In this document: positions 6,383 to 31,965 of the stretch, one piece after another
Position numbering within the stretch: position 1 is the stretch's first letter
Layout of the letters: every line of letters begins with the position of its first letter
Assembly (NCBI RefSeq): GCF_963506605.1
Contig: NC_083276.1
Coordinates: 47,740,001 to 47,804,000, forward strand
DNA length: 64,000 bases
Direction: 5' to 3'
Source: Zootoca vivipara
Taxonomy: Eukaryota
Translations under genes and position numbers: made by a program
The notes under the pieces: generated by a model
Seen by the model: the letters and a program-made list of their open reading frames with translations, nothing else
Told to the model about the DNA's origin: nothing
Databases searched by the model: none

Positions 6383-6527
6383 CTGTTAAAAAGAAATAGG
6401 TTTGCATCCATTCAAAGCAAAAGAAAAAAGAAAAGCCCTCCAATTCCTCTTCTTAAGAAACTGACTGGAATCAAAGCAAGGGAAAACATTGTGCCTTCCC
6501 TCACAGGCTTAATGAGGCCTGACATAC

Positions 6528-7554: not shown

Positions 7555-7685
7555 CAGAATTTGTTCCAAAAAGTGCTTGTTGCTGCTCAGGCAGTAGAAA
7601 TAGGCAGCTTTCCAAGAATGAGCGTGTTCACGATCCAAGAACAATGCCATCACTGCTCGCTCTACATCCAGCTGTTCAGATGTAC
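7555..7685 (-). CDS. ZFYVE26: Spastizin coding exon 5 (131 nt)
   Basis: TSEQLDVERAVMALFLDREHAHSWKAAYFYCLSSNKHFLEQIL. Confidence 0.95.
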
Positions 7686-7854
7686 CTGAAACACCCATAA
7701 GTAGGGTTAATTTCACATATAGTTAAGACACAGAGTAGCACCAAGATGGGCAGTCTCTCTATACATTTCAGCTACAGTCACCAATTATCTTCTGCTTAAA
7801 CTAAGCCAACAATTATCATTGCACAGCAAAGAGAACATGCAAATTTAAACAAAC

Positions 7855-8395
7855 CTTTGCCAGGTGACTTCAGTCCCAGCAGCTTCTCTCTCATCTTCTC
7901 AATGAATACACTGCTGAACAGGTTGAGTAAGGCATGGCTGTCTTTCCTGAGCAGACAGCTGAGCAGCCTCTCCTCTTTCAGCGGGCTCCGCTCAGCCCAA
8001 CAGGCATCCAGAAGTTCTCGGCAGAGAAGCCGTAGCTCTCCAGTCTGATTCTCCACCTCCAAATTCAACATGCCAAGGGCACGATAAATTTCATCCATGG
8101 CCTCGCTCCCACCAGATTCCGACAACTCTGGATTTAGCTGGAGGCGCTTCAAATATTTTAGGGACTCCCAGAGAAAGTCAACGAAGATGTGTTGTGGAGA
8201 GCCGCTGTGTGAGAGCGAAGAGCTCTGCTCAGCAGAGTCTTTCTGGAGAAGCTCCAAGATGGCTTGCAGCTTCCGAGGAGCCTGCAACAGCATCTTTCGG
8301 AGGGCAGAGAACACCTCGGCACTGAACAGCTGCACGGCTCCATCTCTTGGCTTCCTATTTGGCCCATGCCTGTTTCCAAAAGCTTCATATAGTTC
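7855..8395 (-). CDS. ZFYVE26: Spastizin coding exon 4 (541 nt)
   Basis: ELYEAF...SPLKEERLLSCLLRK...SPGK; open frame, AG/GT flanks. Confidence 0.93.
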
Positions 8396-10777
8396 CTGGG
8401 GAAATAGCTGGATTAACAGAAGATTCTTTCCACAAATACAACTGAGAGACGTAAAGAGGTAAGCAGATATATAAAATATGGAGGAGCTGTCAACAGCATT
8501 GGCCCAGTTTACACTGGGGGTCTAAGAGAGCCCCAAACGTAGTTAAACATCTGCAGCTAGACAGCCCCATTCCAGCTCTGTCTGCATACTGCAGCCACCT
8601 CCTACCTGCTTTCTCATCATCCATAGTACAAGGATTCTTCATGGAGCACCAGAGAAGAAATGTTGTTGGGTCCCTGAGACTTCCTTGCTCCTCTCTGGTG
8701 CTACAAGAAGTATCCCCTAAGTGGCAGAGAATGCATGAGCTGATGGTGATAGAACAGAGAGAAGAACTGGAATTAGGTTCTCTGGATGACTGTAGAACCG
8801 ATAGTTGCTACAGCGAAGCAGAGATGTCTGGCCACAGCGAGGATCTTTTTAATTCTCCTGTGTGAACTGGGCCATTGTCTGCTATCTAGGCCAAAGAACA
8901 AGAACTGCAAACACTATTAATGCTTATAGCTATTAAAAAGAAATCAGCAAGAAGATGCAAAATTGACAGAAACAAGAGGAGAAATAAATGATGGGATGGT
9001 GGTGCTGTCCAGCAATTAGAGGGCCAAAGGTTCCCCACCCCTGCAGTGGAGAAACTCCCTTTCTCCCCATGCTGCTCCTGCTGATAAATATGAATTATCA
9101 GGTTATTATAACCCCCACTCCCAATCAGAGACACTCTATCCCACTTGTCACACCCTAGTTAGATTTCCTTCATTTTTGCCAGGAAATAGCTTCTTTGCAA
9201 GAAAACTAATGAACCTGACTATTAAACAAGTAAAGGGCAGAATGAGCATCAAGCATTTCATTATCAAAATATTTTCACGTGCTAGCCTCTCTTGTAAATT
9301 CATTCTACACCTAAAGAGTAGGCCAGGGAGAACTTTAAAATCAAAGCAATAGTTATCAGCTTTAAATAATGAAGTGAAGGTTTCAGAAAGCCATATCAAA
9401 AGTTAGTTACATTTTCAAAGGGAAGCTAAACCAGCTGCATCTTGTACAGAAAGCCGCATGATTTTCTCTTCTTCTTTCAGTCCTATTTAAGGGGTTTCTC
9501 ACCACAGCCATTATGTAGCTGGTTACAGATGTCTGAGTCACGTGAGTTTCTGACTCCATTTTTAAAATCATGACACATGATCCTAGAGCACCTTTCTGTT
9601 CCACAAACATTCATTTTCTTTAATGAAGTTTTTTACACAAGTAGAATGATGTGGTAATATAGGATGCAATAATATCAATAATAAACTGGTGACCTCTTAA
9701 AACAAGTAGAACTCATAAACAGTGTTCCTGGAAAAAATTAAATCAGTTGAACCATTTGGTATTTGATCTCAGGTTGGTAATATCCAGTCCAGAACTGAAA
9801 ACAAAGCACTTACAGGAAAAAACTGAGAAGCCTAAGAGTTTGGCACTAAGACTCAGAACTTTCCCTATTACCTAGACCTTTTGGACTAGAAGACAGAGCT
9901 ATGCAGATCCACTAGCAGTCTGAACAATACTTCATTATGGACCTTAAAACTGAACAACTTTTCTGGAATTGAAGTGGGCCTAACAATTTTACTACACAAA
10001 GGCAGGCAGTTTCCCAACTGTTGTTTATGAGTTATGTTGGAAGGTCCAGAATCCAACATCTAATACATATTAGGTTAAAAACAAACAACCATCAACCTTC
10101 ACAAGAGAGGTGACAAAGTGATAATAAGATAAAATTGTAACATAGGAATATATTTTATACCAAGTCAGTCCACTGGTCCATCAAGCTTGGTACAACCTAC
10201 ACAGACTGGCCTCAACTCTCCAGAGTTTCAAGCAAGATTCTTCCCCAACCCTTCCTAGAGCTGCCAGCATTTGAACCTGGGGCCTATTGCATGAAAAGCG
10301 TGTGCTTTCCCACTCAGCTTGGCCCTTCCCCAAATTAATGCATCCAAAGTATGACTGTTCCCCTTGAAGGAATCAGTGAAATTCCCAATAATCAATCATC
10401 TTCAGAAGGCTGGAGCTGACTGGCAATAAACCTAAGCATAAGGGGGAAGCCTCGCTGGCAAACATCCACAGAGATGACCATCAAAACACTCAAGAAAACT
10501 AGGTTACATAGGTTATATATTTTTGAACAAGCCACACAAAGTTCACTTAAATATGCATGGATTTAGACCAAAAAGTGAAGCGGTGACTGCTCATCTGAAT
10601 CACAGCCAGCTAACTCCTGGATCACCCCACATTTCATATGAATTCCAGGAGTTGGAATTATCTCAGGGCTGTACTGCTCAGCTGTATTTGTTGTTCATAC
10701 ACGAGCTTTGCACACATAAGAGCAACATTAAATGTAACATCTGTTGAACCAAGTTCACCCTCAAGAAGTAATCACAC

Positions 10778-10867
10778 CTTTAGAACAGCATGTGAGACAT
10801 CCTTTTCTAGTTCTTCTAGGAGAAGCAAGAACTCAATTTCTCTCTGGAGAGCTTCTGGAACTGTTTT
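10778..10867 (-). CDS. ZFYVE26: Spastizin coding exon 3 (90 nt)
   Basis: KTVPEALQREIEFLLLLEELEKDVSHAVLK; ttccag| and |GTGTGA. Confidence 0.92.
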
Positions 10868-11144
10868 CTGGAATGAATAGAGAGAACAGAAATTGGAATG
10901 ATATGTATTATAATAGGTATGCAAATAAAATATATCTAGTGAGCGCTTCTTGGCAGACATTTTAGATGTTTTAAAGCTTTTAGGAGCTGGGCAGAGATTG
11001 CAACTTATTTCCCAGTCTACTTTGATACTTCCTGCTCAAATAGACTAATTTCAAATAGACAGGGATTCAGCCAACAACTTGCCAGTACTTATAAACCAAA
11101 TATTTGGTTCAATTAGTTTTAAAGATGACAGCTACAATCTAGGG

Positions 11145-11280
11145 CAGGCTTCCTCAAACTCAGCCCTCCAGATGTTTTTGGCCTACAACTCCCATGATCC
11201 CTATCTAGCAGGACCAGTGGTCAGAGATGATGGGAATTGTAGTCTCAAAACATCTGGAGGGCTGAGTTTGAGGAAGCTTG
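11145..11280. mobile_element. Palindromic hAT MITE
   Basis: TIRs; TSD atctaggg/atctaagg. Confidence 0.85.
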
Positions 11281-11907
11281 ATCTAAGGGAACAATTTATG
11301 GGAACCTTGCAGAGAGCTGGAGGGTGGTGCTTTTGCCAGCGGCAGGGGCAAGGGCATTGCCAAATCTAAAAGAATGTTTTTGCCCCACTGATTCAGTAAG
11401 ACTGCCACCTTTCTTACTAGGTCAACTTCTATGACTATACCAGCTGCTTAGCACACAGAAACGAAGCAGAGGATTTTCTTATCACTTTATCCCCATGACA
11501 GAATCTATATCTGTGTAAGTTCTGCATGTCAGTCTGCCTTTCAATGCACAAGGGCAGGGACATCAAAAACTTAGAACTGCCACTGGTGTTTTGCAATAAT
11601 TGAAAAGAAAGCATCATCATATGCATCATTTTGCTATTTGAACAAAGGTAGCTATTTTGCATTGTGGCCTATCCATTCAGAATATCAACAGGACTTGCAC
11701 TAGCAAATCAATTGAAGAAGAGCATAATGTTACAGTCATAGCCAAAGTCTTCTTTAATGGTCTTGTGATTTATTTTTATTTTTTTGTAATTACTGAAACA
11801 GCAGCAATTCTCAAACTTCATTAGGCAGTACAAAATTTCTCAAATAAGGACAGAAGTATTTTCTTATCTACAAAATTTCTCAAATAAGGACAGAAGTATT
11901 TTTTTAC

Positions 11908-11986
11908 CTGCTCCCATGCAAGCCAAGTCTGCAAAACAAGGAGCCAAAACCAAGCAAGTTTTTGAGGACTACGGTTCGATCCACAC
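11908..11986 (-). CDS. ZFYVE26: Spastizin coding exon 2 (79 nt)
   Basis: (R)CGSNRSPQKLAWFWLLVLQTWLAWEQ; AG/GT flanks, phase-consistent. Confidence 0.93.
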
Positions 11987-12724
11987 CTACAAGGAGATAT
12001 CCCAAAATTAGTCATTTTCTATACTAAATTCATTTATCTAAAAATCTCAGTAGATTTTGAACTGCAGCCTTAAAAAGAGCAGCTCATAACCCCCAAAGCA
12101 ATGGTGCTCAAAGCTCTACCACAATCAAATCCATCCTTGAACAAAGGAAATTCAAAGGGAGACTACAAGATGAAAGCAGTAAATGGCAGTACTGTATATC
12201 AAGAGGTTCAGTACTATTGCTTGTCTATGGAATTGCCAAAATCATTTGACATCACATTACATGTAATAACTGACTTACAAATGTCAGGATACCTGTGTTT
12301 TCAAACATTGTTTTTTGTGAATCGTCACTGTTATGTGATTCTCACCATCTGCACATTTCTGCATTCCACTTCCTTCTTTCATCAAAGTTTACAATCACGC
12401 TTCCCTTCTGCAAATACTTGCTATTCAGGATTGGAGTTGACAGAAGTCTATGTCATAATAAATTTCTTAGTCAATAATCTTTGTTAATAGCGTTGGAAAT
12501 GATTAACACTGCTGCCCTTTTGAAATGAATAAGGAACACATTTAAAATGCACTTTAAGGCTCCATTCACTTACCTGGGAAAAAGCCCCACTGAAAATAAT
12601 GGGACTTACTTCAGAGCATCTATGTATAGCACTGCACTGTAATATTTTAAAACTTGCAACTTCAACTTTCACGCACTTTTTCTACTTTCAACTGTTAGTT
12701 ACCAAAAGTCACTGTAGCGCTCAC

Positions 12725-12915
12725 CTCATATGAGAAGGGCAGACTATTAGAGCATGAAGGATCTTTTCCACTTTTTCACAGCCATCTTCCTGCCACCGGT
12801 GTAACTGAGGAATGCAGGCCTGTGCAAGTTCCCAGTCTTCCCTCTTCACACAATCACAAAAAAACCAGAAGAGCTGTTCCAGGGATGCAGATTCCTCCTT
12901 ACCAAATGGATGCAT
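12725..12915 (-). CDS. ZFYVE26: Spastizin, first coding exon (191 nt)
   Basis: MHPFGKEESASLEQLFWFFCDCVKREDWELAQACIPQL matches the spastizin N-terminus (human MNHPFGKEEAASQKQLFGFFCECLRRGEWELAQAC); donor AG|GTGAG. Confidence 0.96.
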
Positions 12916-13939
12916 CTTCCGGCTTCAAAATGCAAACAAAAGATTAGAACTCATCAGATCCTATTCTGAAATCATATTTGTCAAACATTCACTTACAATG
13001 CACTTCCTAAAATGAGAGATGGAAATCTACAGAAAGATTATGTCTTTCCCTACACAAAGTTAGAATGTCTAGCAGGACAGACATCTAACACTAATACATT
13101 TGATTGTCCACATAAACAAACAAAACAAAAAACACTTTTATAAAATACTGTAACAAGAATAGCAATTGTCTTGTTTGCTCATTGAAAATCCGTCAAAACA
13201 TTTGCAGGTAAAGAGGTGAGAGTGAAAACAGGAAAGTGGAAACTGCAGCTGACTAGCCTTCCCTCAGGCCTAACAATAGCAAGTTGAGAGACTAAGCTTA
13301 TCTTGAGTGGAAATACAGGGGACAGTATGGGTGCAACGGAAGCTATAATGGGGTTAAATCTTTGTGAGGATATGGAGATCTCTGAGGGGGGGTGGGGCTG
13401 AGCCAGAGCCAGAGAGGGTTAGCAAATTCTGCATTAAGATGAGCAAAACCTTTTAGCCCAGCAAGAATTATTCCTGCAGGTTAAAAAAAACCAAAGTCAT
13501 CTAGTGGACTCATTAATAAACCAGGGCTCATTTATTATAGCTGAACAGTTCTTATGGTGCCACATCTGACTTAACTGCTCTGTGGGAAACTTTCCACTGC
13601 CAAATAAACTTTACCCAGCTAATCTATGATGAATCAAGCCCCCCTTGATCATGCAACTTGCTCTAATTCACATTTCAGTTTCTTAAAGAAGTACCTTGAC
13701 AGGCACTACTATTCAAGTATCAAGCTTAAAAGTATCTGGTCTAGGTACCTTCACGCAGAATTACGCCCCACCAAGCAAGCTCAGTAGAGCTGACTCCAAA
13801 GAGGGCAAATGAATGTAGCGCTGACGTTCCGTGGCTGCTTTTTATACTTGACAACTTTGCTAAAAGGTTACTCTCATCACGTGGGCAACTGTTAATTTAA
13901 AAGCCTGGATATATTTAAATAACCACCCGCAACAATCTA

Positions 13940-15366: not shown

Positions 15367-15502
15367 CAGGCATCCCCAAACTTCGGCCCTCCAGATGTTT
15401 TGGACTACAATTCCCATCATCCCTGACCACTGGTCCTGTTAGCTAGGGATCATGGGAGTTGCAGGCCAAAACATCTGGAGGGCTGCAGTTTCAGGATGCC
15501 TG
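15367..15502. mobile_element. Palindromic hAT MITE
   Basis: Perfect 8-bp TSD GTTTAGGC. Confidence 0.9.
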
Positions 15503-15512
15503 GTTTAGGCAG

Positions 15513-16001
15513 TGTCAGGGGGACTCCCTACAGGGAGCCTCCCCCCATCATCCTGACTAGCGACAGCGCTAGTAGCGGGTCAGGGGGAAGCGGAATGGAA
15601 GGGGGAAGGCTCAGCGAGGCATCAGAGTCCTGGCAACGCTGTGGAGAACAGACGGTGGAAGAAGGGTTCAGCGACGTATCGGAGCCCCTGCACCACTCTG
15701 ACCATCTAGGAGAGGAGGCGTCAGGGAAGTGTCGGAGCCCAGGCACCGTCCTAGCCAGCAAGGGGAAGAAGGAACACTGCTCCACGCACCCAAACGCAGG
15801 GTGAAGGGGCGGCGTATCGGGGTGCCCAGGTTATTATGCCCGCCCCAAAGCTGGCGGATGCCATTGCCGGGTTCTGAGAGTGACTAAGCGGTCATGTTTT
15901 CTGTTATCTCTGCACTGTAAATAGCATGCACAATAAAACCTTTAAAGACACAACGGACTGGAGCGTCTTTACTCAGGAGTAGCTGCAACAACTCCCTGGC
16001 A
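15513..16001 (+). mobile_element. Solo LTR (Gypsy-like, 489 bp)
   Basis: TGTCAGGG...CCCTGGCA termini, 5-bp TSD GGCAG, AATAAA at ~15932. Confidence 0.8.
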
Positions 16002-16540
16002 GGCAGGAAACCCTGGGTGGTTGTTGTTGTTGTTGTTGTTACAATGTTACAATAATGTCAGCCGGCTGCCTATAAAAGCAGGCCGGCTGAGCTACCAGTT
16101 AGTCTGTTCCAGCTTATGAATAAAGAACTGCTTGAAGAAATTGCTGTGTCGTCTGCTGGTCTACCCACTATTAAACAACTGTGGTACAAGTATATCCTCT
16201 ATTATATGTGTATAAAAACTGTTGTTGTTCTTGCACCTCTTAAGCCAGTCTTTGAAACTTACTGGTTGATCAATGGCAAAATGAACAAATCCCCCTATTC
16301 CCAAAGCATTATGTCAAATATTCTTCCCTCTAACTCTGTCTGGCATCCATCTGAAGATGTTGACTGTTGTGTGACTCAGCTATGTGCATGGGTGGTGTCT
16401 AACTGGTGTTTGCTAGAGATAATGTTCCCCACGACATCCTCTATTCTGGCTCTTTTGTTTGTTTTGCTTATAGGCAGGAAAAGAACAAAACTTTTTCCAT
16501 AGACTTCTAAGAAGGCCTGAGTGTAACAGGCCAAAAAAAG

Positions 16541-16567
16541 ATGACGGAAAATGAAAAGTGCACAACT
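16541..16567 (+). CDS. Galectin-related protein (LGALSL-like), candidate start exon MTENEKCTT
   Basis: aagATGa context, phase-0 donor |GTAAGT; strong acceptor ttttgtttgttttgcttatag at 16473 upstream; joins in frame to the exon at 20431. Confidence 0.6.
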
Positions 16568-16936
16568 GTAAGTATTAAAAAAACCTACTTTCTACTTTCT
16601 TGCAAGCCTATTTATTTGTGCAAGTATGTAAAGAGGAAGCGGCGAAAGAGTTTTTATTTAACTTATTCATTTTAAAGTTACGGTATATCTCTTTGAATCC
16701 TGGGGGGGGGGGGGAGAGAACCAGACATGGCATTGGCCTGCCAGTGCTAATCCCGTAAATGTCTTAGTTGACTGTAGCATCCACATTGTTCAGACAGAGT
16801 GCTATTAAGTGCTTCTGATGCACTGAAATCAGAAGCAGAAAAAAAGAAAAAAGAGGGCTCAGAAAGTGGGAGGCCAGACAAACTGAACTAGTCTGTTCCC
16901 CTCTGCGAGTACAGCAGCATATATTTCCCCCACTTA

Positions 16937-17290
16937 AAGGTAAAGGTAAAGGGACCCCTGACCATTAGGTCCAGTCGTGACCGACTCTGGGGTTGCGCGC
17001 TCATCTCGCATTATTGGCCGAGGGAGCCAGCGTATAGCTTCCAGGTCATGTGGCCAGCATGACAAAGCCGCTTCTGGTAAACCAGAGCAGCACATGGAAA
17101 CGCCGTTTACCTTCCCGCTGTAGCGGTTCCTATTTATCTACTTGCATTTTGACGTGCTTTCGAACTGCTAGGTTGGCAGGAGCTGGGACCAAGCAACAGG
17201 AGCTCACCCCATCACAGGGATTCGAACCGCCGACCTTCTGATCAGCAAGCCCTAGGCTCAGTGGTTTAATCACAACGCCACCTGGGTCCC
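16937..17290 (-). mobile_element. Sauria SINE, full length
   Basis: GGGACCCAGGTGGCG head, (ACCTTT)n tail, 14-bp TSD ATTTCCCCCACTTA. Confidence 0.93.
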
Positions 17291-18962
17291 TCATTTCCCC
17301 CACTTACCATACTGTAAATAGGCCAAGGGATTCTCTAACCATCTTAAGTGACTATGTTTGAAACTGTTTTAAGTCCGTTTTTATTTTTCATTTTTAAAAA
17401 AATCATTCATACACTTGCCACCTTGGCAGGAAGGTCAGGATATAAATTCTCTGAACTGCACTGCAGGGTTGTAGTAAACTACCCTCTTCCACCCTCTCGG
17501 CAATGGAACTGCTGCCAACCATGAAATTATTACCGGTACAGTAGTTGTGAGATAACATTATTGTTTTAGATGTTTGAAACTGTTTTAAGCCCATTTTTAT
17601 TTTTCATTTTAAAAAAATCATTCATACACTTGCCATCTTGGCAGGGAGGGCAGGATATAAAATTAATAATAATAAATTCCCACGTAATGCAGTGAGACTT
17701 ACTTCTGAGTAAACCCATTGAGAACCAGGCTGCACAAGAAAAGCTACTGCAAAGTCCTTTTATGGATGGCATTTTAAGATTAAGATTCTATAGAAATAAC
17801 TGGTTAAATTGAAAATGGGAAATGTTTTGCAACTGTGAGGCTTTAGCATAACCAATGACGGTCATGAAAACGTTTCTTTTTTCAAATGCGTATCAAGTAA
17901 CCACATCCATCCTTGCGGATGGCAGGGCCAGGAATCAATCTAGATTGAAAGCAGCATGCTAAGGACAAGCATGAACAATTCCAGACTAAGAAAACACTAT
18001 ATTTTTATGCTACAAATGGCTTAGTGTTTGTGCAGCCATTGTGGTGCAGTGCAGAATCAATCTGCAAGCAGCTTTTATTTTTGGAATGAAGCCAGTTCCA
18101 ATAAGTACTTTTCAGAAGCAAATAGTAGATCTGGATTGTTTGTGTACTATGTAGAGAAAAACAAGCACTCAGTCTCCTTTAATTCTAGAATAAAATGTCA
18201 TGTGTGCACAGCTTAAGAGTCATCCAGTACATTCTTGTACTGGCAGTTCATAATTGCTCTGGGAGGTGTTTGGACACACAGTTCAAACATTCCAGATTAC
18301 ATTCCATTCTGTGATCAGTGCTTTTTCATTGTCTAGCAAGTATTCATGCGATAGGTCTCCTCACTCCATCTCTCCACAAGACTAGAGGGAAAGAGGGGGA
18401 AAATTCAAAGTTATGCCTGAATTTGAGATTAGTAGTTTTGTCCTCGGTGTATTCAAGCAGGTTTCAATGAAGGATTGCTATGCCTGTAGTGAGCAAGGGG
18501 TGTGACCCTCCAGATGTTGGACTCAGGAGCTCCCATCACTTGCAGCCAGCATAGCCAATGGTCATTTTAATATATCAACATCTGGAGGGCCACAGGTGCA
18601 TCATCCCTGCTGAGTAGCCATCTCTCTTAAACAGGATTTGGCAGTGGGTGCGGGGTGGGAGGAGATTGTAATGTTTCAAAAACTGGCAAAGTATTTACAA
18701 CCAGAGACAATGCTTCAGAATAGTTCTGAAATAAGAGGCATATTGTTATGTGTCACCCCAATCTCTGAGTGGTGAGAAATTCCAGGAATTCCAGTGCTTA
18801 CCTAGGGTTCAGCTTTCTTGAAATGAAAGTCAGTGGAGACTACACTTTCTTTAGGATCAGGGGAAGCATTTCCCGTTTCATCACTTGAGTCCTCCCCTGC
18901 AGTTTTATCCTCACAAAAGCCCTTTGACGTAGCTTAGGAAGAGAGAGATGGGTCATCTAGTG

Positions 18963-19336
18963 CAGCGTTTCTCAACCGCTGTTCCGTGGCACACTAGTGT
19001 GCCGCAAGACGCTGGCTGGTGTGCCGCGACATGCGGCGACGAGAAGGGCGATTTGCATTGTCATGTGCCTGGCGGCCGCCAATAAAAAACGCTGACCCGC
19101 CGGAAAGCAATATTTCTCCTACTCTTTCCCAAAGCTCAGTGCAAACGAGCCTGGCGGCCGGCAATACTCAGCACTGACCCGCCGGAAAGCAATATTTGGC
19201 AAGTGTTTCTTACAGTCATAATTATAATATAGGGCGACACAGAGTTAAATTTTTTAACCTTTTTAATGGTGGTGTGCCTCGTGATTTTTTTCACGGAACA
19301 AGTGTGCCGTGGCCCAAAAAAGGTTGAGAAACACTG
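18963..19336. mobile_element. hAT (Charlie-like) non-autonomous element
   Basis: CAGCGTTTCTCAACC...GGTTGAGAAACACTG TIRs; perfect TSD ATCTAGTG. Confidence 0.9.
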
Positions 19337-19372
19337 ATCTAGTGAGCTTCAGAGCTGAGGATTTGACTCCGG

Positions 19373-19544
19373 GGCTGTGTATACACCATACATTTGAAGC
19401 ACTTAGCTTCCCTTCTCAATAATACTGGGAACTATAGTTTACCTCTCACAGAACCACAATTTCCAGCACCCTTAATAAACTACAGTTCCTAGATTCTTTG
19501 AGGGGAAGTCATGTGCTTTAAATATATGTTGTGTGTATACAGCC
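19373..19544. mobile_element. Palindromic MITE (possibly PIF/Harbinger-like)
   Basis: GGCTGTGTATACAC...GTGTATACAGCC termini; related degenerate copy ~27890-28065. Confidence 0.55.
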
Positions 19545-20077
19545 ACAGGTCTCCATTTCCAGTCCGACATTCATTGTATTACACTGGCTGTTCACTACAC
19601 ATTTATTAAGTCTAGAGTAACCCAAGTGTGAAACGAGGGCACTCAACCTTTTGGGGCTTGAGGGTACATTTGGAACTGTTGGAGGTACCATAAATATCCA
19701 TTTCACAGAAGAAAAACAGGTGATGCTCACTGACCCCCATAACATGCAAAACACCTAGTCCTCGCAAAAAAAAACACCCAGATAAAACCGAGACAAAAAA
19801 AGCAGGCAATCTTTCTAAAAGTCAGTTCCCCAACCAACCAAAAGCCTAAAAAACTACTTTAAAAAATTGAGAGGGGTCAGGGCCTTGACAAGTGCCAAGG
19901 GGGCTGTCTGAAAATGAAATGCTTTGATGAGGCAGTGCAATCCTCAGCAAGACCTACAGTCCAAGGTAGCAATCTTGTGTACGTTTATCTGGGTGTAACC
20001 CTCAGTGAACTCCAGTTAAAAGGTTTGAGCTTCACATCCATTTTCCTTTCTCCTACAGGGTGGCTCTTTGGATGAAA

Positions 20078-20230
20078 GGCTGTAGCTCAGTTGTAGGTAG
20101 AGCACTTCCTCTGCATGCATAAGGTCCCAGGGTCAAACCCCAGCATCTCCAGAGAGGACTGGGAATGTCCCCGTCTGAAACCCTAGAGAGCCACTGCCAG
20201 TCACATTATTCCAGTACCAACCAAGATGGA
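20078..20230 (+). mobile_element. tRNA-derived SINE (Squam3-like)
   Basis: GGCTGTAGCTCAGT...GGTCAAACCCCAGCATCTCC head with non-tRNA body. Confidence 0.7.
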
Positions 20231-20430
20231 CCAATAGTCTGACTTGGTATAAGACAGATTTCTATGTAGTTGTTTTTAATGCAGAGCTTAAAAGACAGGT
20301 CCACCTAGTCCTAGGAAGAAAACTCCTGTGTACATATACTGTTAGTAATAGATAAATATGCAAATTTGTATTTTATTGTACAGGTGTCGTTTTCAAACAC
20401 ATATTCAGAATTATTGTTTCCCCCCATTAG

Positions 20431-20519
20431 GTGGAGAAATACGTCGGTGAGATTAAAGGAGGACTAAGGCCAACCATGAAAATCACTATCATGGGGGTAA
20501 TATGCCCTGCCCCCAAGAG
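20431..20519 (+). CDS. Galectin-related protein, CRD exon 1 (89 nt), GC donor
   Basis: VEKYVGEIKGGLRPTMKITIMGVICPAPK resembles LGALSL GHIKGGMRPGKKVLVMGIV; donor AG|GCAAGT. Confidence 0.88.
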
Positions 20520-21797
20520 GCAAGTGTGTCAGCTGGCATTCTAGCAGCTGCTTCATGGATGTATCTGGCGAAAATTGCTTATAGGTGCAGATCTATTGAG
20601 GGATAGCATTAGCTGGGTAAAAAGGGAGAGATCGCATTGTCATCTTTATTTAAGATTACAATATGGAGGACATCAGAGGAGCACTCAACATAATTCACTA
20701 TTTCTGCACTGTAGCTCAGCAGAGCATAACTGACCATTCTTAGCTCACACATCCAGACACTAGTCTCTTCCCATTCTAACATTCTATGATTCCATAATTA
20801 AGTCTCCTGTGAACCCAAAGTAATCACTCAGAAAGGTGGCTGCCTGCTGGAACTCTGCATGCTCCTTCCAATTCGCCTTCACTGGGGGTGGGCAATCCTG
20901 CTGACCCATCTCTGCTTCAGTTGTGGTTGGAGCACTGAATCATCCTGATTAATGTCAGAATTGCCTCTACCGTCACCAAGGCTCTCTATTGCCTCTCTGC
21001 ATGAGCCAGTGCTGTGTGCTTCCATCCTTCCCATTGGGAGGGCAGGGGAAAGGGGTCATGACACTTCTGATGCAAAGATGGAGGAGAAATAGCTGTTCCC
21101 AGAGGAGGCATTTCCAGAATGATGCCCCATGCACAGGGCCAGCCCTACCAGTAGGCAGAAAGCGGGAACCCAACTGTTCCTTCTGTACCCCCCAGCTGTT
21201 TCCTTTGTTGCTGTTTAGTCCTGCCGGTTCCCTCTAATCTGGCCTGCTGCTTTATGTGCAGTGCAAGAAGCTATCCCATCACCCCTGGTGCTGAAGGAAA
21301 ATTAATCTGCATGTCTGGTCAGGTGTTTAAAATTTGCTTGAGTAGCCACACACAATGCATCGTTGCCTCATATATCTGTGCTGTTTCTTACAGAGCACTA
21401 TGATGATGTCACACTATAAAGGCAGGCTGTGTGTCATATCTGATGTATGTTTCTGGACAGCTCTCAAAAGGCTTTTTCAGGGTCTAGGCCAGTGCAGTTT
21501 AGCTACTTTTCTCCAATTGCAGCTGGAGGTAAGCATTTAATGCAGGGTTGGAGAGCCTGTGGCCCTCTAGAGACATTGCTGGGCTCCCACCAACCCCAGT
21601 CTGCATGGCCCATGGTGAAGGATGGTGGGAGCTGCAGTCCAACAGCATTTGGAGGGCCACAGGTTTCACATCCTTAGACTAGGCCATACTTACCCTGGAA
21701 ACAAATATGACATTATAATGCCACAGCATGTGATAAATGAGCTCACTATCATGTTAGATTGCTGAATCGTTACTTATCACATGTTCATTCCTTCAAG

Positions 21798-21972
21798 TTT
21801 TTCAGTGACTTTGCTCTGTGATCCCATGGATGCCAGTCTGGACATTGGGCTGTTGCTTGCGGTCAGCTTTCTTGAGAAATCCATTGTCCGGAATTCACGG
21901 ATTGCTGGGAAATGGGGTAAAGAGGAAAAGACCATTCCCTACTTCCCATTTACAGCAGGGGAGTCATTTAAG
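21798..21972 (+). CDS. Galectin-related protein, CRD exon 2 (175 nt)
   Basis: FSVTLLCDPMDASLDIGLLLAVSFLEKSIVRNSRIAGKWGKEEKTIPYFPFTAGESFK; RNS...WG.EE...PYFPF galectin signature. Confidence 0.93.
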
Positions 21973-22007
21973 GTAATTTTACTTGATAGTATGGGAGATA
22001 GATATGT

Positions 22008-22010
<3 letters not shown>

Positions 22011-22060
<50 letters not shown>
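22011..22060. repeat. (TA)n microsatellite
   Basis: Seen directly. Confidence 0.97.
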
Positions 22061-22065
<5 letters not shown>

Positions 22066-22488
22066 CCTAAGATCTTCTGGCCCAGTGTGGTCTCTTTTGA
22101 CTGACAGCAGCTCTCCAAGGCTTTGGGCAGATTTTCTTTTTCAACTGTTCAGATCATCTAACTATAGGTGCTTGGAACTAAAGTTGTGGTCGTGTTTGTA
22201 ATAAACATGTCCTTTGTTTGCTCCATCTGTATTTACAGGATCAAAGGAAGACCATTTATTTATTTATAAAGATATTTCTAGGCTGTCAAGTCATAATAAA
22301 ATATGGTTGTCATTTAAGTGGATCTTCCAGTGTAATGTTTTCAATTCATTTTCAAAAGCATCTATACATAATCAAATCCCATTGAAATCAATAAGCTTGC
22401 GACTCATTATTTTGTGGGTGCCCAACTTTATTGGGATTGATGTCAGGCTCTGCCCCTGCCACCCATGGATCTCCTTTGTTTTTTTCAG

Positions 22489-22632
22489 ATGGAGCTCTTG
22501 TGCGAGCATCAGCAGATTCGGGTCTTGCTCGATGGACGTCAGCTCTGCAGTTTCACTCATCGTGTGCAGCCTATGCAAAGGGTGACAGCTTTACAAATCT
22601 CCGGAGACTTCAGGCTCACCAAAGTGGCTTGA
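22489..22632 (+). CDS. Galectin-related protein, last exon (144 nt incl. TGA)
   Basis: MELLCEHQQIRVLLDGRQLCSFTHRVQPMQRVTALQISGDFRLTKVA* resembles [33 protein letters not shown]...INGDLQITKLG. Confidence 0.93.
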   Translation: MELLCEHQQIRVLLDGRQLCSFTHRVQPMQRVTALQISGDFRLTKVA

Positions 22633-23429
22633 AGAAAAGAATATATAATATATAATCCCCTATCTCCCCTTGGTTGTTGAAGAAATGTTCTCCCTATGCC
22701 GTTGGATGTTGTTCATTACTTTTGCTCTTATGTGTGCTTCTTGAGATTTTAAATGAAGGCTGTGCTCTATAAATAGCCCTATTATACCTTGATAAGTTGC
22801 AGCAATATATTTCAATGTGCATTGTTTTACAGCTGCAGCAGCACTTTTGTCACATCACCGGCTTAAAACTCAGATTCTTTTTCTCAATTCAGATTGAAGC
22901 TGGTTTGAGGGGAAATGCATCAAAACACAGTGTTTCATAAGAAATGACAGGGTAGATATGAAGCGTAGCTATCGTCATGTGTACACTATTTCCTAAACCA
23001 GCAATGGGAGGATGTAGAATTAATGAGACTATGTACACAGCCTATGATAAGCTACCATATGTTAAAAGGCAGCACATATGTAGTTGTACTTTTTCCTAGC
23101 TGTATATCATCTGATCCGAAGCATTTCTGGTGTGGACAGTCATGCAACGACAACATGAAGAAAACAATGTGGTGAGAAAAAGGAGCATTCCTAATAAAGC
23201 AGTCCCTATTCCACATCGTGTGCATGCCCCCAACATAAGGGTGGATCAGACTGGGAATACAGGACTTTACATGCACCTTTTGCCTAACAGTTGGATTTAA
23301 GAAGCCAGTATACAGAATTTGTATGAATTAGCCTCAAGGTGCAGCTCTCATCAAGCTTTCCTTTGTGAAGGGGGATGGTGAACATGGACTATCGCTCTCA
23401 TTATCCCTGACCATTGGTTATGCCACTAC

Positions 23430-25194: not shown

Positions 25195-25322
25195 CTATGT
25201 TAGCTGTTTGATGGCTTCAATCCAGCTTGCCCTCTCTGCCTTGGAACTGGCCTGCATAAAGTAGTGAATGTCATTCTTTGTTATGATTTTGAAGAGGTTG
25301 CCCTGCACATTCCCTTTCACTC
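25195..25322 (-). CDS. PLEK2: Pleckstrin-2 last exon incl. TAG
   Basis: VKGNVQGNLFKIITKNDIHYFMQASSKAERASWIEAIKQLT*. Confidence 0.96.
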
Positions 25323-25476
25323 CTGCAACAAAAAGGAAAGGGCAAAGACTGTTAGCAAGGTTCAGGGACAGGGACAGTACAACTACTGCAGTAATAGCAA
25401 AATCTCACAAGGGAGAGGGTTTGAATATGATAACGCAGTCTTGCTTTTGTTGATAAGAGAGTGTGTTCTTTTTTGG

Positions 25477-25770
25477 CAATCACTCGGAGCCGAATAAGAT
25501 TGTCTTCCATTAACACGGTTTTAACAGTGAGTCCGTAAGTGACTGTGGAGGCCAATTCTGGATCCACAGGTCCTTCCACAGTGAGGACATAGGTTTCCGT
25601 GTGGGCGCTGATCACGGTGAGGGTTTGCCACGTGTGCCTTCCTCATAGCACATTTCTCCCTTTTGTCCTGAGTTTGAGCATCTTCAAAGCCTATGACACC
25701 TTTGTTAAAGGCTGCCCTCCAATTTGAGTGCTTGCAGGCTAGTGTTTCCCAGTTGTCAGTGTTTATACTA
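25477..25770 (-). mobile_element. RTE-clade LINE 3' fragment
   Basis: - strand encodes CPHCGRTCGSRIGLHSHLRTHC* (RTE C-terminal motif); second copy at 57327-57620. Confidence 0.8.
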
Positions 25771-25818
25771 CATTTTATACTACAATTTTAAAGATTTGCC
25801 TACTGCACTGATACAAAT

Positions 25819-26483
25819 ACAATACTAATATATCATATTCTGTAATCACCTTAACATGAGACACACATAATGCCCAAATCAGTCACATAATATAAAAGTC
25901 TTATAAAGTATATTAAAGTCCAAACCATATATATTGAATATTAGGCCCAAAATAAATCAGTCCAAACGAGAGAAGTAACAACTCCATGAAGTAATAAAAA
26001 GTCCTATGGGACCTACATTATTTAAGGACAATAAGGAATTTGTTGAAAAATGGGTGTCCATTCTGAACAAATGTTCATGTGACCTTATGCTTTTGATTAT
26101 AGAACAATCGGCTCATGATTAAGACAAGATCAATGCTGAGTTAATGGATTTAAAATAACCTTCTCTGTTTTTACTACTTCATGGAGTTGTTACTTCTCTC
26201 GTTTGGACTGATACTGAACTCCATGTAATATCAACAGTCTATGATTTGTTACCTCATGGAATTGTCATATCCTATGTTTGGATGGTACTGGACTCTATGA
26301 ACCTTACATGTACTATGGACTTTTGCGTTTGGCTGTACCATCGTCTATGTATTGATTTATTTTGGGCCTAATATTCAATATATATGGTTTGGACTTTAAA
26401 AAAACTTTATAAGACTTTTATATTATGTGACTGATTTGGGTGTTATGTTAAGGTGATTACAGAATATGATATATTCGTATTGT
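25819..26483. repeat. Long inverted repeat (fold-back)
   Basis: 25819-26000 is the reverse complement of 26168-26483 apart from a ~144-bp block present only in the right arm. Confidence 0.9.
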
Positions 26484-27278
26484 GATAATCAGCCGGTTAC
26501 GTTTAGTGTGGTGTGAAAATATTGTGGACGTAGCCCAGGTTCATTGTTGTGCACTGATATAAATACAGGCTTGGATCTGGTGTGCTAGCGGAAGCTAGTG
26601 CAAGGGCTCCCGCTAAAAAAAGTGGGTTTCTTCCCCCTCTTGTCTGCCTGAGCACCCACACACCTTGTCCAAATCCACTTTGGAGGGTTGGGAGAATTTC
26701 TAGAACAGCAGAAAGGGCATACCACTTCATCTGGAAAGCAGAAATGCTTGCACAAGAGTGTGAAGTATGATGCGATGTTGAATTATTCTCTTTATCTTTA
26801 CATGACCTCCCACCCACCCAAGTGCCATGAAAGGCCAAAAAAGCAACACTTGTTTTCTCCATGCTATACTGTCCTTAATCTGGCAACATGGCTGCTTGAG
26901 CTATTTATAATCAAGAGAGCCATTCCTATTGTCACAGTTGCCCCTTTTCAAGGCACCCTAGTTGGTGCTAAGACTGGAGAAGGGGCAAACAGGGCCTGGC
27001 CACCTGGCCTTTATGACAATTTCCTAAACTACTGTTTTTGGAAACCTACAGGGGAGGTGTGATTTGGCTAAATTAGGAGGGTGTGGAATTTGTGGATTTC
27101 ATTATGCCCACTACCATTACCACTTAATCTCCCATAACTGGGAGCCCAAGCCCTAATATCTGAAATGGCTTCAGCTTTCCCAGTGTAAGCAGCTGGTTCA
27201 TACTAAGCTTTATTCATAAACAAGAAAGGAACACGTGAAGAGCTCCACAACCGAAGGAACTGTTACGTTCATACTTGC

Positions 27279-27357
27279 CTGTTGGGACTCCATTATCTTC
27301 CAATGCTGAGACAAGGCAACCACGGAGAGAGAATCCCCCAACTGGTCGGTTATCTTC
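27279..27357 (-). CDS. PLEK2: Pleckstrin-2 exon 8 (79 nt), GC donor
   Basis: EDNRPVGGFSLRGCLVSALEDNGVPT; donor CAG|GCAAGT. Confidence 0.94.
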
Positions 27358-28326
27358 CTATGGTGGGTAGAAAGAGTCCAAAGGGAGAAGTAAGGAATAT
27401 GAATTATATGTTCTATGCAACACATTTCACTTTGGCAAGACATGCAGTAGTTGGCCACATCAGCACAACATGAAACTTGTCCCAGCCTGTTCCTCTTTAG
27501 GAATAGGCCTCTGCAATTCTTTTCCAGCAGTGTTGGGCTCACTGGAGGTTCTAGGTGTTAATTATGTACAGAGGTAGTATCTTAATTTTAAAAAATTATA
27601 CATGTCTTCCTCCAAAGTGTTTTAATAACAGAGTTGAATTCTAAAGACAAGGGGGAAATTATAGGAACCTAGGAAGCTGTCTTATATTGCATCAGACAGT
27701 TTTTGCCCATCTATTATTAATTATTATTAATTGATTCCATTGATGAATTGCCTTAATAAAAACATTATCTAGGCAACATACACAGCAAGATCAACAAAAC
27801 CAACGCATATTATATAATTCAATGAAATCATAAATAAATTGTGATAAAATCAACCCAGCAGTGTCATAAATCCAATCTAGATCGACACAGGTTGTGAATT
27901 ATACCTTTGAAGCAGATTCTTTGCCTCAAATAATTATGGGCACTGTAGTTTCTTAAGGGTTGCTGGAAATTATAAATCTGCGAGGAGTAAACTGCAGTGC
28001 CCAAAATTCTTTGATGGAAATAATGTGCTCTGAATGTGCTTTAAATATTTGGTGTGCGCACAGCCACAGACCAAACTCCAGCAACCAACCCAATTAGCAT
28101 AACAACAAAACACAGCGCCATGTGTGCCGCCTTGCCCCTGCAACTGAGAGAGCCGGGGCACAACATGCACCCCCCCCCAAAAAAAATGCCATATTTGTTG
28201 AGCACAATAGGTTTAGTTTCAGCCTCACAGGAGTCTAACCTAAGCACAAAAAATTCAGATCTATTTTACCAAAAAGTTACACACAAGACATGAGGTAGTT
28301 TATGTATTGGGAGTCCACCATCTCAC

Positions 28327-28410
28327 CTTTGTGGGGTCATAATAGTGTAGGAAAGCAGGGTCAGCCCTCAGGACAAAGCGCCTCACCTTCCAGTTTTTCC
28401 TCTTGTGTCC
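28327..28410 (-). CDS. PLEK2: Pleckstrin-2 exon 7 (C-terminal PH domain)
   Basis: GHKRKNWKVRRFVLRADPAFLHYYDPTK. Confidence 0.96.
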
Positions 28411-29671
28411 CTAAAAGTTGAAAAGATTAATAGATTCCATTTCACCTTCCGTTTCTCAGTTTGTCCTTCTGAAATGGCCTGTAGATCTGCATACACTGAG
28501 ACGTTTCTCATTATCTGTTTTACCACATTTTATCTTCACAACAGCCCTGTGAAACAGGTTTAGCCGAGAGGAATATTGTCATAGCCAAGCAAGTTAGGCA
28601 AAGAAACATTTTCAGAAGCAGAATTGAAGTCATTGTGCATTTTGCCAAGTCACTACATCAACTTCCTTTCCTAGCTCAAATAGAGACAGACGTATCTGAA
28701 TAGCAACTGTAGGCTAGATTCGAATGCTTGTCTTTGAGAACCAAATTTGCTTCAGAATCAGAATATAATAATGTACACAGTTGGACCGCTGTTTCATAGA
28801 AGAGAAGATCTGGTTTTAGTGCAAATTATTTTGGAATTCTGCTAAGAATGAAATTCAAAAGGATCACTTGGCACACAAATCCTTGCGGGGGTTTCTGACC
28901 TCACTATTCACCAAGGCACTTCACAATGGTCTCTTAATTCCATTTTAACTTTCAGTGCACCAAAGTGTGTGGGGAACAACCCGATTTACAAAACTATTTG
29001 AAATCAGTATAGATAGTTCTGTGTCCGGGGGGGGGGGGGAGGAATCAAAGGCTTTCCTGGTCAGAAAATTGTTTTTGCCAATTATGATTTGAACAGCATT
29101 TCTTAAGTCACACAAAAAGCTAAAGCATACATTCAGAAATATCACAAGGTCCAGTGCTTTTTGTGTTGTACCACATCAGGTGAAAGATTGTGTTTCTCAA
29201 TTATTCTCTACCTCAAACATTATTTGCTAAAGGAAAGGTAGCATTTCTGCAAGAAGGATTCCAGTTAGTTTTCTAAAGGCAAATATATTTCCTACTGAAG
29301 TATTAGGCATAGAACACCACATTTTCTTTCTATACATTTGGTCCTATGTGCACTCTTTTGCAACACTGTTCATGTGATTGTGATCTTTGGGTTGCATTCA
29401 ACAGTACGTCAGCAAACCTCCCCCTCTCCTCTCCTTATGTGCCCTCCTCAAATCTGCTCCAGAGCCTCCCCCAATGCACTGGAGCAGTTTTTGAGGGTGG
29501 GCATGAGCAGAAGAGGCGAGAGAAGTCCCATTGTACAAGCAGATACAACCCATATTGTTTAATTTGATTACCCAACTTTCTTCTTTAAAAAGAGCTTAAG
29601 AATATACTAAATACAGCATGGCCCAGCCTCTCATTCTCCACTTGCCAACATGATTCAGAAGTCATGGTCAC

Positions 29672-29773
29672 CTGTTTTATTAAAAATCCTTGTTTTAAAA
29701 TGGTGCCACTCAGTTCAATAATGTTAAGATGAATATTTTCTTTGGAGGTGGTTCTCTTCTTATAGTTTTCCGC
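29672..29773 (-). CDS. PLEK2: Pleckstrin-2 exon 6
   Basis: AENYKKRTTSKENIHLNIIELSGTILKQGFLIKQ. Confidence 0.95.
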
Positions 29774-30433
29774 CTGCAATAAAAATTAAAGATATTGGGG
29801 AAATTGGGGTAGCAAAACTAGTACAAAATATAGAAGCCTTCCTTTCCTCCTTTCACATGGAACTTTCATTCCTCAGTCTTAGAAACTTCCATCTTCAAAG
29901 CGGGTTTGTTTGTTTTTTGCCAGACACGATAAACAGCAGGGCTGGTCTCAGCACCCAGTCTCCTCGGGCAGTTGCCAGGACCCCAGTGCTCTTAAAGGGC
30001 CCACCACTACTGATGTCACCCCTAGACAGGTGGCTCACAGCCACCCATTGCAGGTCTTAGCACTGCTGCCACCACTCCCAGCAAATAACGCTGCTGGAGA
30101 GGCCCAGGGGGCCTTTTGCTGCCTCCTCACTAGTAAACAGACGCAGAAGCGCATAAATTAAGGTTCATTATGGCAGGTACAAAGAGCTGTTCCCAGATAA
30201 ACGCCAAACTGTTCCTGTTGAATGTCCACACCCAACCCAAAGTCCAACTACTGTATTAGTCAGATATAACTTGGAAAGCATTAGAAAGATTTTCCCCAAG
30301 TTATCTTTTGGCCTGATTTGCATTTGCCTGCAAATCTTTCCTATCAGTCTCCCCAATGCATATGCAGACTGCCCCCGTTTTTTTTATTGTCCTCATATGC
30401 AGAAAGGAGAATTCCAGAAATCCCATCACTTAC

Positions 30434-30621
30434 AAATGTGTACAGAGCTGTAGAGTCGTCCAAAAACTGCTCTGTCAAATCGCCATTCCTCATGGCTTCA
30501 ACACTGCGGGCTCCCACAGGCTTAATGACATTTTCATCCACCAGCACAGAGGCCAGGGGGACAGCCTCTAGACGGGAGGCTGCAAAACTATTGGAAATCA
30601 GCCAGTCAACCAGAATAGAGC
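30434..30621 (-). CDS. PLEK2: Pleckstrin-2 exon 5 (DEP domain)
   Basis: SILVDWLISNSFAASRLEAV...EQFLDDSTALYTF. Confidence 0.96.
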
Positions 30622-31567
30622 CTGAAAAGAATAAAGGTGGCTGTTAAGGTGAGCAAAAACTGCATGCAGCCAGTCAATTCCCAAGGAAGGTAGAGGTTTT
30701 CAGTACTCGTCCTCTAATAGAGAAACGAGACTTAAATTGTAATATATCCAGACTGAAGAGCATACATTTGCATGCACGTTTTCATAAACTTGGCAGGTAG
30801 GACTGTCTTTCTGGATAACCTTATTCTCATTCTCAAGGCATTTTGCAGGCAAAGGGGACCTTTTCAACTCTACATTTATATGATTCTGTGAAGCACACAC
30901 ACACAATTCATAAATGATACCTAAAATTAGAGGTGTTTGGGCTCCAGACTGCTGTATTTTTCCCTTGCATTTTAATCTTTCCTTTCTTTAAGGAGCATAG
31001 TACAGTGTAGATGGGTCTCCCTCTTTCCTTTCATTTCATCCTCATCACAGCCCAGGGAGGTAGATAGGCTGAGAGGCCATGATTGGCTCAAAGTCACCCA
31101 GTGAACTTCACGGCCAAGTAGGGAATTGAACCCAAATCCCCTGGTCCTAAAGCAATTCATTAATTCAGGGGTAGCCAATGTGGTGTCCTCCAGTTGCAGT
31201 TGGATCAACTGCAGTCACCTCTAGACATTTGTTTAGCTGGCTGGGGCTGATGGAAGTTGTAGTTGAACACCATATGAAGGGCACCATGTTAGCCACCCAC
31301 CCCACACTCCAAACACTACCCAAATACTAGGTTTGGAAGCCACTCCCACTAATGTGAAAGTAGGCTACCTCCATCTAATCACCAGCATGTGAGGTCTGGC
31401 TGTAGCTACTAGTGGGAGAGAAATCACTGAAGATGTGCTCTTATTGTTCATGTCCCAGGGCTGTGGCCTAATAATGAAAACAAGGTTCTGAAGCTGCACC
31501 ATGGTGGGCCCTGGGAGAAAACAACATTCCTTTGCATCAGATTATATTGAAGTACTAGGAGGTTAAA

Positions 31568-31932
31568 GGGACCCAGGTGGCGCTGTGGGTTAAACCACAG
31601 AGTCTAGGGCTTGCTGATCAGAAGGTCAGCAGGTTCGAATCCCTGTGACGGGGTGAGCTCCCGTTGCTCGGTCCCAGCTCCTGCCCACCTAGCAGTTCGA
31701 AAGCACATCAAAGTGCAAGTAGATAAATAGGGACCGCTCCGGTGGGAAGGTAAACGGCGTTTCCGTGCGCTGCTCTGGTTCGCCAGAAGCAGCTTTGTCA
31801 TGCTGGCCACATGACTTGGAAGCTGTCTGCGGACAAACGCCGGCTCCCTCGGCCTATAGAGCGAGATGAGCGCGCAACCCCAGAGTCGGACACGACTGGA
31901 CCGGATGGTCAGGGACCCTTTACCTTTAACTT
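31568..31932 (+). mobile_element. Sauria SINE, full length
   Basis: Head and tail as above; 13-bp TSD TACTAGGAGGTTA. Confidence 0.93.
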
Positions 31933-31965
31933 TACTAGGAGGTTAGTAACATGAGGTTTGCCTAC

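Follow-up and report, generated by a model that had tools for sequence, protein, structure and literature searches.

The window analyzed here, a 64,000-nucleotide stretch of the Zootoca vivipara genome, contains an intact, transcribed and spliced galectin-related gene, which we identify with near certainty as the orthologue of LGALSL2 (synonyms LGALSLA, "galectin-related protein A/2" and "galectin-like 2"). The explanation that best accounts for the data as a whole, to which we give a probability of about 0.92, is that the gene is an LGALSL2 orthologue in the sister lineage of LGALSL/GRP, that this lineage would have arisen prior to the jawed-vertebrate radiation, been retained from sharks to birds and gone missing in mammals, and that its product has a proposed non-classical role. 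The finding is already known, because Günther & Galuska (Front Immunol 2023, PMC10343441) have described LGALSL2/LGALSLA as an ohnologue that mammals lost, a chicken study has followed (Günther et al. 2026, PMC13696195), and the gene itself is in RefSeq. The first-pass annotation of this DNA had treated the lineage as undescribed, while the 2023 article makes the same arguments from ohnology, mammalian loss and synteny.

As that annotation proposed, the gene is intact. Four coding exons of 27+89+175+144 nt, all on the forward strand, join in frame without a stop to encode a 144-aa single-domain galectin-fold protein, and the joined translation is exactly that of RefSeq XP_034975909.1 (P0001), "galectin-related protein A-like [Zootoca vivipara]". 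Every one of the motifs that annotation had named (IKGGLRP, IPYFPF, ELLCEH, DGRQL..F.HR and ISGD..LTK) is found in the protein. The coding part of exon 1 (16541–16567) encodes the peptide MTENEKCTT, with the start codon in the context AAAAAGATGA and a donor ACT/gtaagt; an N-terminal MTEN[DE][KR] is common to the tuatara, turtle, bird and frog orthologues. The gene start had been placed at 16474, which does not hold: no ATG is present there, an in-frame TAA lies at 16508, and coding begins at 16541. Position 16474 directly follows the acceptor-like sequence ...ttgcttatag/G, and in Elgaria and Chrysemys the long isoforms that have been predicted run on across the equivalent region. The lacertid CTG at 16517 occupies the site of an upstream ATG, which adds 8 residues, in geckos, skinks, varanids and agamids.

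Exon 2 (20431–20519, 89 nt) encodes strands S1–F2 and lies between the acceptor cccccattag and a GC donor, AG/gcaagt. Exon 3 (21798–21972, 175 nt) encodes residues 39–97, a stretch that the structure model assigns to S3 through the beginning of F3 and that includes the sugar-site residues and IPYFPF, and exon 4 (22489–22632, 144 nt including the TGA) encodes strands F3–F1. This layout, with a short middle exon spanning S3–F3, is of the CRD2 type. The 3′ untranslated region (22633–23300) is covered by RNA-derived contigs (X1 records 3, 5 and 6) and by raw RNA reads (X21 and X22); it has an AATAAA at 23193, yet the RNA-derived contigs extend to at least 23300.

Both the exon 2–3 and exon 3–4 junctions are backed by spliced RNA-derived contigs from two independent studies, which settles in favor of expression a check that the first-pass annotation had left to be made. 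In contigs X1 and X4, 20517/20519 is spliced directly to 21796/21798; the two pairs both differ by 2, and intron 2 is therefore a GC–AG intron. The same contigs show the GT–AG joint from 21972 to 22489. The raw RNA runs X21 and X22 each hold few LGALSL2 reads, too few to reveal junctions. Reads of X22 within intron 2 (21411–21713) are no evidence for intron retention, because they match at only 95–99% and lie on a dispersed repeat.

An exhaustive HMMER list consisted mostly of multi-domain invertebrate galectins, and named relatives were drawn from cluster look-ups and from word searches with region 7–64 of the stop-free open reading frame at 21781–22101. In a maximum-likelihood tree of 54 rows, the Zootoca gene falls in a starred clade (98/99*) of shark, ray-finned fish, coelacanth, amphibian and sauropsid sequences, from which mammals are absent. 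LGALSL forms a separate starred clade (98/98*) with the same species groups plus mammals. Within the LGALSL2 clade the branching matches the species tree, with the Zootoca gene beside that of Podarcis, and the tree shows the LGALSL/LGALSL2 split to be older than the shark/bony-vertebrate divergence. Both genes are present in Paroedura, Xenopus tropicalis, gar, Mobula and Polypterus. An approximately unbiased (AU) test rejects a sauropsid-only duplication (p 1e-82). Within its lineage the Zootoca protein is well conserved, at 95% identity with Podarcis, about 75% with birds and 56% with skate. Together with the further AU test given below, the two clades and the presence of two genes per species bear out the claim of a second GRP lineage apart from LGALSL.

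The domain and fold are in line with this assignment. PF00337 matches exon 3 at E 2.3e-11 and exon 4 at E 4.3e-10, both well past chance. The nearest solved protein to exon 3 is chicken GRP (5it6, E 4e-10), and for exon 4 the human and chicken GRP proteins score E 6e-10. An AlphaFold model of the protein has a pLDDT of 90.4 and 10 strands of at least 3 residues; it superposes on 5it6 with TM scores of 0.88/0.95 and an rmsd of 1.2 Å, and its top Foldseek matches are galectin CRDs throughout. The protein is thus modeled as a galectin β-sandwich without an N-terminal tail whose nearest fold is that of GRP. Of the residues of the classical sugar site, the S4-strand His-Asn-Arg triad is replaced by Leu58, Ala60 and Ser62 and the S6 Arg by Lys83; Val69, Asn71, Trp78 and Glu81 are retained. 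The Trp is present in 52/52 aligned members of the lineage. Position 62, Ser in Zootoca, is Asn in most lineage members.

Given that, among solved proteins, GRP comes closest in both sequence and fold, and that GRP-like motifs are common to both proteins, the gene could be read as a fast-evolving 1:1 orthologue of LGALSL (GRP, HSPC159). That reading is refuted, because lacertid genomes hold both genes: Podarcis muralis and Lacerta agilis each have their own LGALSL of 171 aa (P0378) on another chromosome-sized contig. Forcing the Zootoca gene inside LGALSL costs 49.9 lnL (p-AU 3e-5), and its identity to LGALSL proteins is just 35–44%, which accords with the earlier remark that it is more diverged than an LGALSL orthologue should be. 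It also lacks the roughly 30-residue N-terminal tail of LGALSL, as had been noted, and its neighbors are PLEK2 and ZFYVE26, not PELI1, VPS54 and UGP2. We consider the chance of 1:1 orthology negligible. A different objection concerns the term ohnologue, since LGALSL and LGALSL2 may be ancient paralogues from a small-scale duplication long ago, one copy of which was then translocated. The tree dates the split only to before the shark/bony-vertebrate divergence, and it gives no firm placement to the lamprey and hagfish sequences, which lie on long branches. Against this, LGALS8+LGALSL and LGALS3+LGALSL2 occur as pairs on matching paralogous chromosome segments (PMC10343441), and the PLEK/PLEK2 and PELI1/PELI2 pairs flank the two loci (in part after a table in PMC10343441), which makes a small-scale origin quite improbable.

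It might also be argued that the Zootoca LGALSL2 gene is a decaying or unexpressed copy that is intact in appearance only, a view for which one could cite the very low counts in the two raw RNA runs and the disappearance of the classical sugar-binding triad. The loss of the triad is lineage-wide, however, and includes the expressed chicken protein. Members of the lineage as far apart as skate and lizard keep the 144-aa frame at one length, with alignment columns that are invariant or nearly so, and the confidently predicted fold and the spliced transcripts from two independent studies likewise speak against decay, to which we attach scarcely any weight. As for GRIFIN, the lens galectin-related inter-fibre protein, it too is a single-CRD protein, and its sugar site is degenerate in mammals. 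The GRIFIN orthology that was to be checked is not borne out: chicken GRIFIN (5nld) matches exon 3 at E 0.039, compared with 4e-10 for GRP, and the GRIFIN synteny of chst12, lfng, eif3b and brat1 (PMC10343441) differs from that of the Zootoca gene.

The neighboring genes agree with the orthology of the Zootoca gene to LGALSL2. ZFYVE26 (1–12924, reverse strand) lies directly upstream, head-to-head with it; the first coding exon of ZFYVE26 is at 12724–12924, and the gene extends past the window start. It was identified by matches to PDB 8yad_C over residues 3–65, 121–288 and 548–751; a Pfam search of its open reading frames returned no match. PLEK2, the neighbor named by the first-pass annotation, is indeed found directly downstream (25198–37177, reverse strand), where open reading frames with Pfam DEP and PH domains give a PH-DEP-PH protein tail-to-tail with LGALSL2; 2.6 kb separate its last coding exon from the stop codon of LGALSL2. 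These are two of the three synteny markers (vti1b, zfyve26 and plek2) given for LGALSL2 in PMC10343441; the third, VTI1B, is outside the 64-kb window.

In the protein databases, no mammal is among 94 word-search matches, and the named mammalian representatives from the protein cluster look-ups and the tree all fall within LGALSL, with none in LGALSL2. Two candidates were rejected: an elephant-shrew protein (P0160), considered as a second mammalian lineage, is nested in mammalian LGALSL in the tree, and an unnamed Logan cluster (P0153), considered as a mammalian remnant, is nearest to teleost LGALSL2 and includes read-through intron sequence. Judged from the protein databases together with PMC10343441 and PMC13696195, LGALSL2 appears to be missing from mammals.

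The lizard gene order is ATP6V1D-EIF2S1-PLEK2-LGALSL2-ZFYVE26, which places LGALSL2 exactly between PLEK2 and ZFYVE26. At the human locus, we take it that a block from TMEM229B to RDH12 parts PLEK2 from ZFYVE26 and that PLEK2 is presumably inverted with respect to EIF2S1. If the human order is as given, LGALSL2 would have sat where a rearrangement broke the chromosome, and the mammalian stem may have lost it through that event rather than by gradual decay, a suggestion that we regard as unlikely.

Compared with known systems, the Zootoca gene shows no substantive difference from LGALSL2/LGALSLA as described in the 2023 and 2026 papers (zebrafish Lgalsla type). It shares with them the clade, the length of ∼144 aa, the absent tail, the CRD2-type exons, the ZFYVE26 and PLEK2 neighbors, the loss of the S4 triad with the Trp kept, and the apparent absence from mammals; the lacertid CTG and Ser62 are the only details that differ. 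LGALSL (2jj6, 3b9c and 5it6) is the nearest relative by sequence and fold. Both have a single galectin-fold domain with a large S3–S4 loop, a degenerate classical sugar site and the motifs IPYFPF and E.LCEH. LGALSL differs in having the N-terminal tail and in lying in another paralogon, that of PELI1, VPS54 and UGP2, and it occurs in mammals. It also evolves more slowly: gecko and frog LGALSL are 77% identical, and gecko and frog LGALSL2 are 62% identical.

The first-pass description of the function as essentially uncharacterised is outdated by the chicken study of October 2026 (PMC13696195), which reports expression in testis and epididymis and no binding on a glycan array. The site changes and these chicken results suggest that LGALSL2 would not be a classical β-galactoside lectin and that its function in chicken would be tied to vesicles in Sertoli cells and in cells of the efferent ducts. 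It may more likely act as a small soluble adaptor for protein partners or unusual glycans, binding mainly through the better-conserved F-face and loops. By extension from this single chicken study, we give such a mechanism in the lizard about even odds. The result is slight as a discovery and serves rather as a check, in which a correct gene model and evolutionary inference were rebuilt from raw sequence alone. The compact and well-defined ZFYVE26-LGALSL2-PLEK2 locus with its GC–AG intron is usable in a comparative study of the apparent mammalian loss of LGALSL2.

The galectin-like gene LGALSL2 is encoded on the forward strand by four coding exons, and each of the four pieces reported in the first-pass annotation is found in the window. 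Exon 1 (16541–16567, 27 nt) begins with ATG ACG and ends with ACT before a gtaagt donor; exon 2 (20431–20519, 89 nt) runs from a cccccattag acceptor to an AG/gcaagt donor; exon 3 (21798–21972, 175 nt) is bounded by ccttcaag and AAG/gtaatt; and exon 4 (22489–22632, 144 nt) follows tttttttcag and closes with a TGA stop. The coding sequence sums to 27+89+175+144 = 435 nt, or 144 codons plus the stop. Comparison by script shows that the joined model is exactly P0001, the database protein XP_034975909.1 ("galectin-related protein A-like [Zootoca vivipara]", 144 aa, 100% identical), and the gene model is already present in RefSeq. Support for exon 1 comes from the RefSeq model together with the N-terminus MTEN[DE][KR], which is conserved in tuatara, turtles, birds, and frogs.

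The gene had been proposed to begin at 16474, which does not hold as a coding start: there is no ATG at this position, and a TAA lies in frame at 16508. Position 16474 may be an acceptor-like site (ttgcttatag/G). It does not fix the 5′ limit of exon 1, because DNA equivalent to that upstream of the ATG exon is translated into similar peptides in the long isoforms predicted for Elgaria and Chrysemys. The stretch at 16406–16510 translates to ...ILYSGSFVCFAYRQEKNKTFSIDF, which is akin to the N-terminal extensions in those isoforms (P0028 from Elgaria and P0014 from Chrysemys); this likeness suggests a conserved 5′ region, either promoter or UTR. Immediately 5′ of the ATG, 16517–16540 reads CTG AGT GTA ACA GGC CAA AAA AAG (LSVTGQKK). 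Geckos, one skink, one varanid, and one agamid have ATG at the codon matching the lacertid CTG at 16517, and their predicted proteins are 152–154 aa long (MS.TGQKK-MTEN...); the lacertid protein begins at MTEN, as in turtles, birds, and frogs. The 120-aa RefSeq "isoform X2" entries from Podarcis and Lacerta (P0391, P0394, and P0395) start at the internal Met25 (MKITIMG...), and therefore imply the use of alternative 5′ exons, with the ATG exon skipped.

LGALSL2 is transcribed in Zootoca. RNA-derived Logan contigs from two runs of the same organism, belonging to two studies, are spliced exactly as in the model at the exon 2–3 and 3–4 junctions. The contig joint from 20517 to 21796 has two ambiguous bases and resolves to 20519/21798 with GC..AG ends; that from 21970 to 22487 (cut +2) resolves to 21972/22489 with GT..AG ends. 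Intron 2 (20520–21797) is thus of the GC-AG type (AG/gcaagt ... caag/), as seen in the spliced contigs of both studies. The contigs extend across the 3′ UTR to 23300 at least, and two raw RNA-seq runs contribute a handful of reads only, in exon 4 and the UTR. Within the 3′ UTR, the 32 nt at 22892–22923 are common to another, more abundant 1210-nt contig in set X1 (depth 16), and also occur in three reads of raw run X22 with loose ends on either side; this is a short repeat or motif common to another transcript. A single inserted base is also recorded after 22908. Reads of X22 at 21411–21713 are only 95–99% alike because a dispersed repeat copy sits in intron 2. This short repeat occurs on both strands (4133–4453, 11200–11366, 15427–15520, 21447–21677, 60055–60300, and 62080–62204), has a translation including ...RDDGNCSPKTSGGPSL... 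or ...RDHGSCRPKHLEGRSLGMP..., and is probably a squamate SINE. Intron 3 carries a (TA)n microsatellite of ~50 nt at 22010–22060, and read mapping skipped 21995–22069 as repeat.

Relatives were sought exon by exon, with full-length searches using P0001. Since an exon-length query misses full-length proteins in the word search, the natural stop-free ORF at 21781–22101 (region 7–64) was taken as query, and it returned P0001. Exons 3 and 4 match Pfam PF00337 (E 2e-11 and 4e-10), and among solved proteins they come closest to chicken GRP (5it6) and human GRP (2jj6/3b9c), GRP being the product of the sister lineage LGALSL. Queried with P0001, the word search brought up proteins of this type from squamates, tuatara, turtles, alligator, birds, frogs, one newt, one caecilian, gar, sharks, and rays, with no mammal among the matches. 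One exhaustive HMMER search, together with cluster names, extended this set to coelacanth, bichir ("LEGLA"), sturgeon, and teleost "galectin-related protein A", and recovered lamprey, hagfish, and the LGALSL lineage as well; catfish GRP, used as a seed, retrieved named LGALSL proteins spanning sharks to mammals.

The maximum-likelihood tree has 54 rows, takes C-terminal domains of invertebrate galectins as its root, and contains two starred clades, LGALSL (98/98) and LGALSL2 (98/99). The former holds chimaera, sharks, rays, ray-finned fishes including "lgalslb", lungfish, frog, squamates, turtle, bird, and mammals; the latter holds sharks, rays, bichir, gar, sturgeon, teleost "A", coelacanth, amphibians, and sauropsids. 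The window gene adjoins Podarcis in the LGALSL2 clade, where branching matches the species tree, and five species (Paroedura, Xenopus tropicalis, gar, Mobula, and Polypterus) occur in both clades. AU tests on groups named after the tree was seen reject placement of the lacertid gene within LGALSL (p 3e-5) as well as a duplication confined to sauropsids (p 1e-82). A separate LGALSL of 171 aa also exists in Podarcis muralis and Lacerta agilis, on a different chromosome-sized contig. The proposal of a second GRP lineage apart from LGALSL is borne out by these results, and the tree places the split before the shark/bony-vertebrate divergence. The tree alone is no proof of whole-genome duplication, because the lamprey and hagfish proteins sit on long branches with unresolved placement. 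One candidate mammalian LGALSL2, P0160 from the elephant shrew Elephantulus edwardii, was rejected since it groups within mammalian LGALSL; this second LGALSL-type sequence of the species lies inside a 366-aa "uncharacterized protein" prediction and is probably a retrocopy or annotation fusion.

ZFYVE26 (minus strand; PDB 8yad_C residues 3–65, 121–288, and 548–751) lies head-to-head with LGALSL2, from its first coding exon at 12724–12924 on to the window start. PLEK2, already named as a neighbor in the first-pass annotation, is a PH-DEP-PH gene at ~25.2–37.2 kb on the minus strand, tail-to-tail with LGALSL2; beyond it are EIF2S1 (minus) and ATP6V1D (plus). These two appear to share a head-to-head promoter region in the GC-rich stretch between them, 53500–55100, and 152 N at 57175–57326 in the ATP6V1D region are an assembly gap or masked. 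LINE-type ORF fragments (reverse-transcriptase, C-terminal parts; 34540–35193, 50077–50319, and 25524–25787, all minus) lie in PLEK2 and EIF2S1 introns and beside the PLEK2 3′ end.

The first-pass observation is confirmed and its interpretation supported, and the lineage, its mammalian loss, and its synteny are already known. A 2023 article (Front Immunol, PMC10343441) names the gene LGALSL2, "also called LGALSLA", reports it in all Gnathostomata with loss in Mammalia, lists vti1b, zfyve26, and plek2 as syntenic, and interprets the pairs LGALS8+LGALSL and LGALS3+LGALSL2 as loci duplicated in the second whole-genome duplication. The claimed loss agrees with that article and with the lack of mammals among the word-search matches; the lineage is not new. 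Nor is function essentially uncharacterised, as had been stated: in chicken (Poult Sci, October 2026, PMC13696195), LGALSL2 is expressed mainly in testis and epididymis, the recombinant protein binds to vesicles in Sertoli cells and proximal efferent ductules, and a broad glycan array gave no significant binding. Lizards are absent by name from both articles, with reptiles in their alignment.

The AlphaFold model of lizard LGALSL2, built from an 80-row alignment, is a confident beta-sandwich (pLDDT 90.4). Its top solved match is chicken GRP (TM 0.88/0.95, rmsd 1.2 Å, 40% identity); human GRP ranks next, ahead of C-terminal domains from galectins 5, 9, 8, and 4. As the first-pass annotation had noted, the protein is without the N-terminal tail of LGALSL; that tail has ~30 residues. 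Identity between gecko and frog is 62% for LGALSL2 and 77% for LGALSL, and between gecko and skate 51% and 63%; by these comparisons, LGALSL2 is the faster-evolving. Sugar-site residues were read from the alignment to classical invertebrate domains. The S4 His-x-Asn-x-Arg positions are Leu58, Ala60, and Ser62; S5 Val-x-Asn is retained (V69, N71), as are the S6 Trp and Glu (W78, E81), with Arg replaced by Lys83. The S6 Trp occurs in 52/52 aligned members of the lineage. Rough strand-wise conservation is somewhat higher for F-strands than S-strands in both lineages (0.82 vs 0.76 and 0.88 vs 0.81), and the chicken study describes this site pattern too, along with conservation of the F-face. Together, the site changes and the chicken work suggest that lizard LGALSL2 likely would act as a non-classical, largely glycan-independent binding protein.
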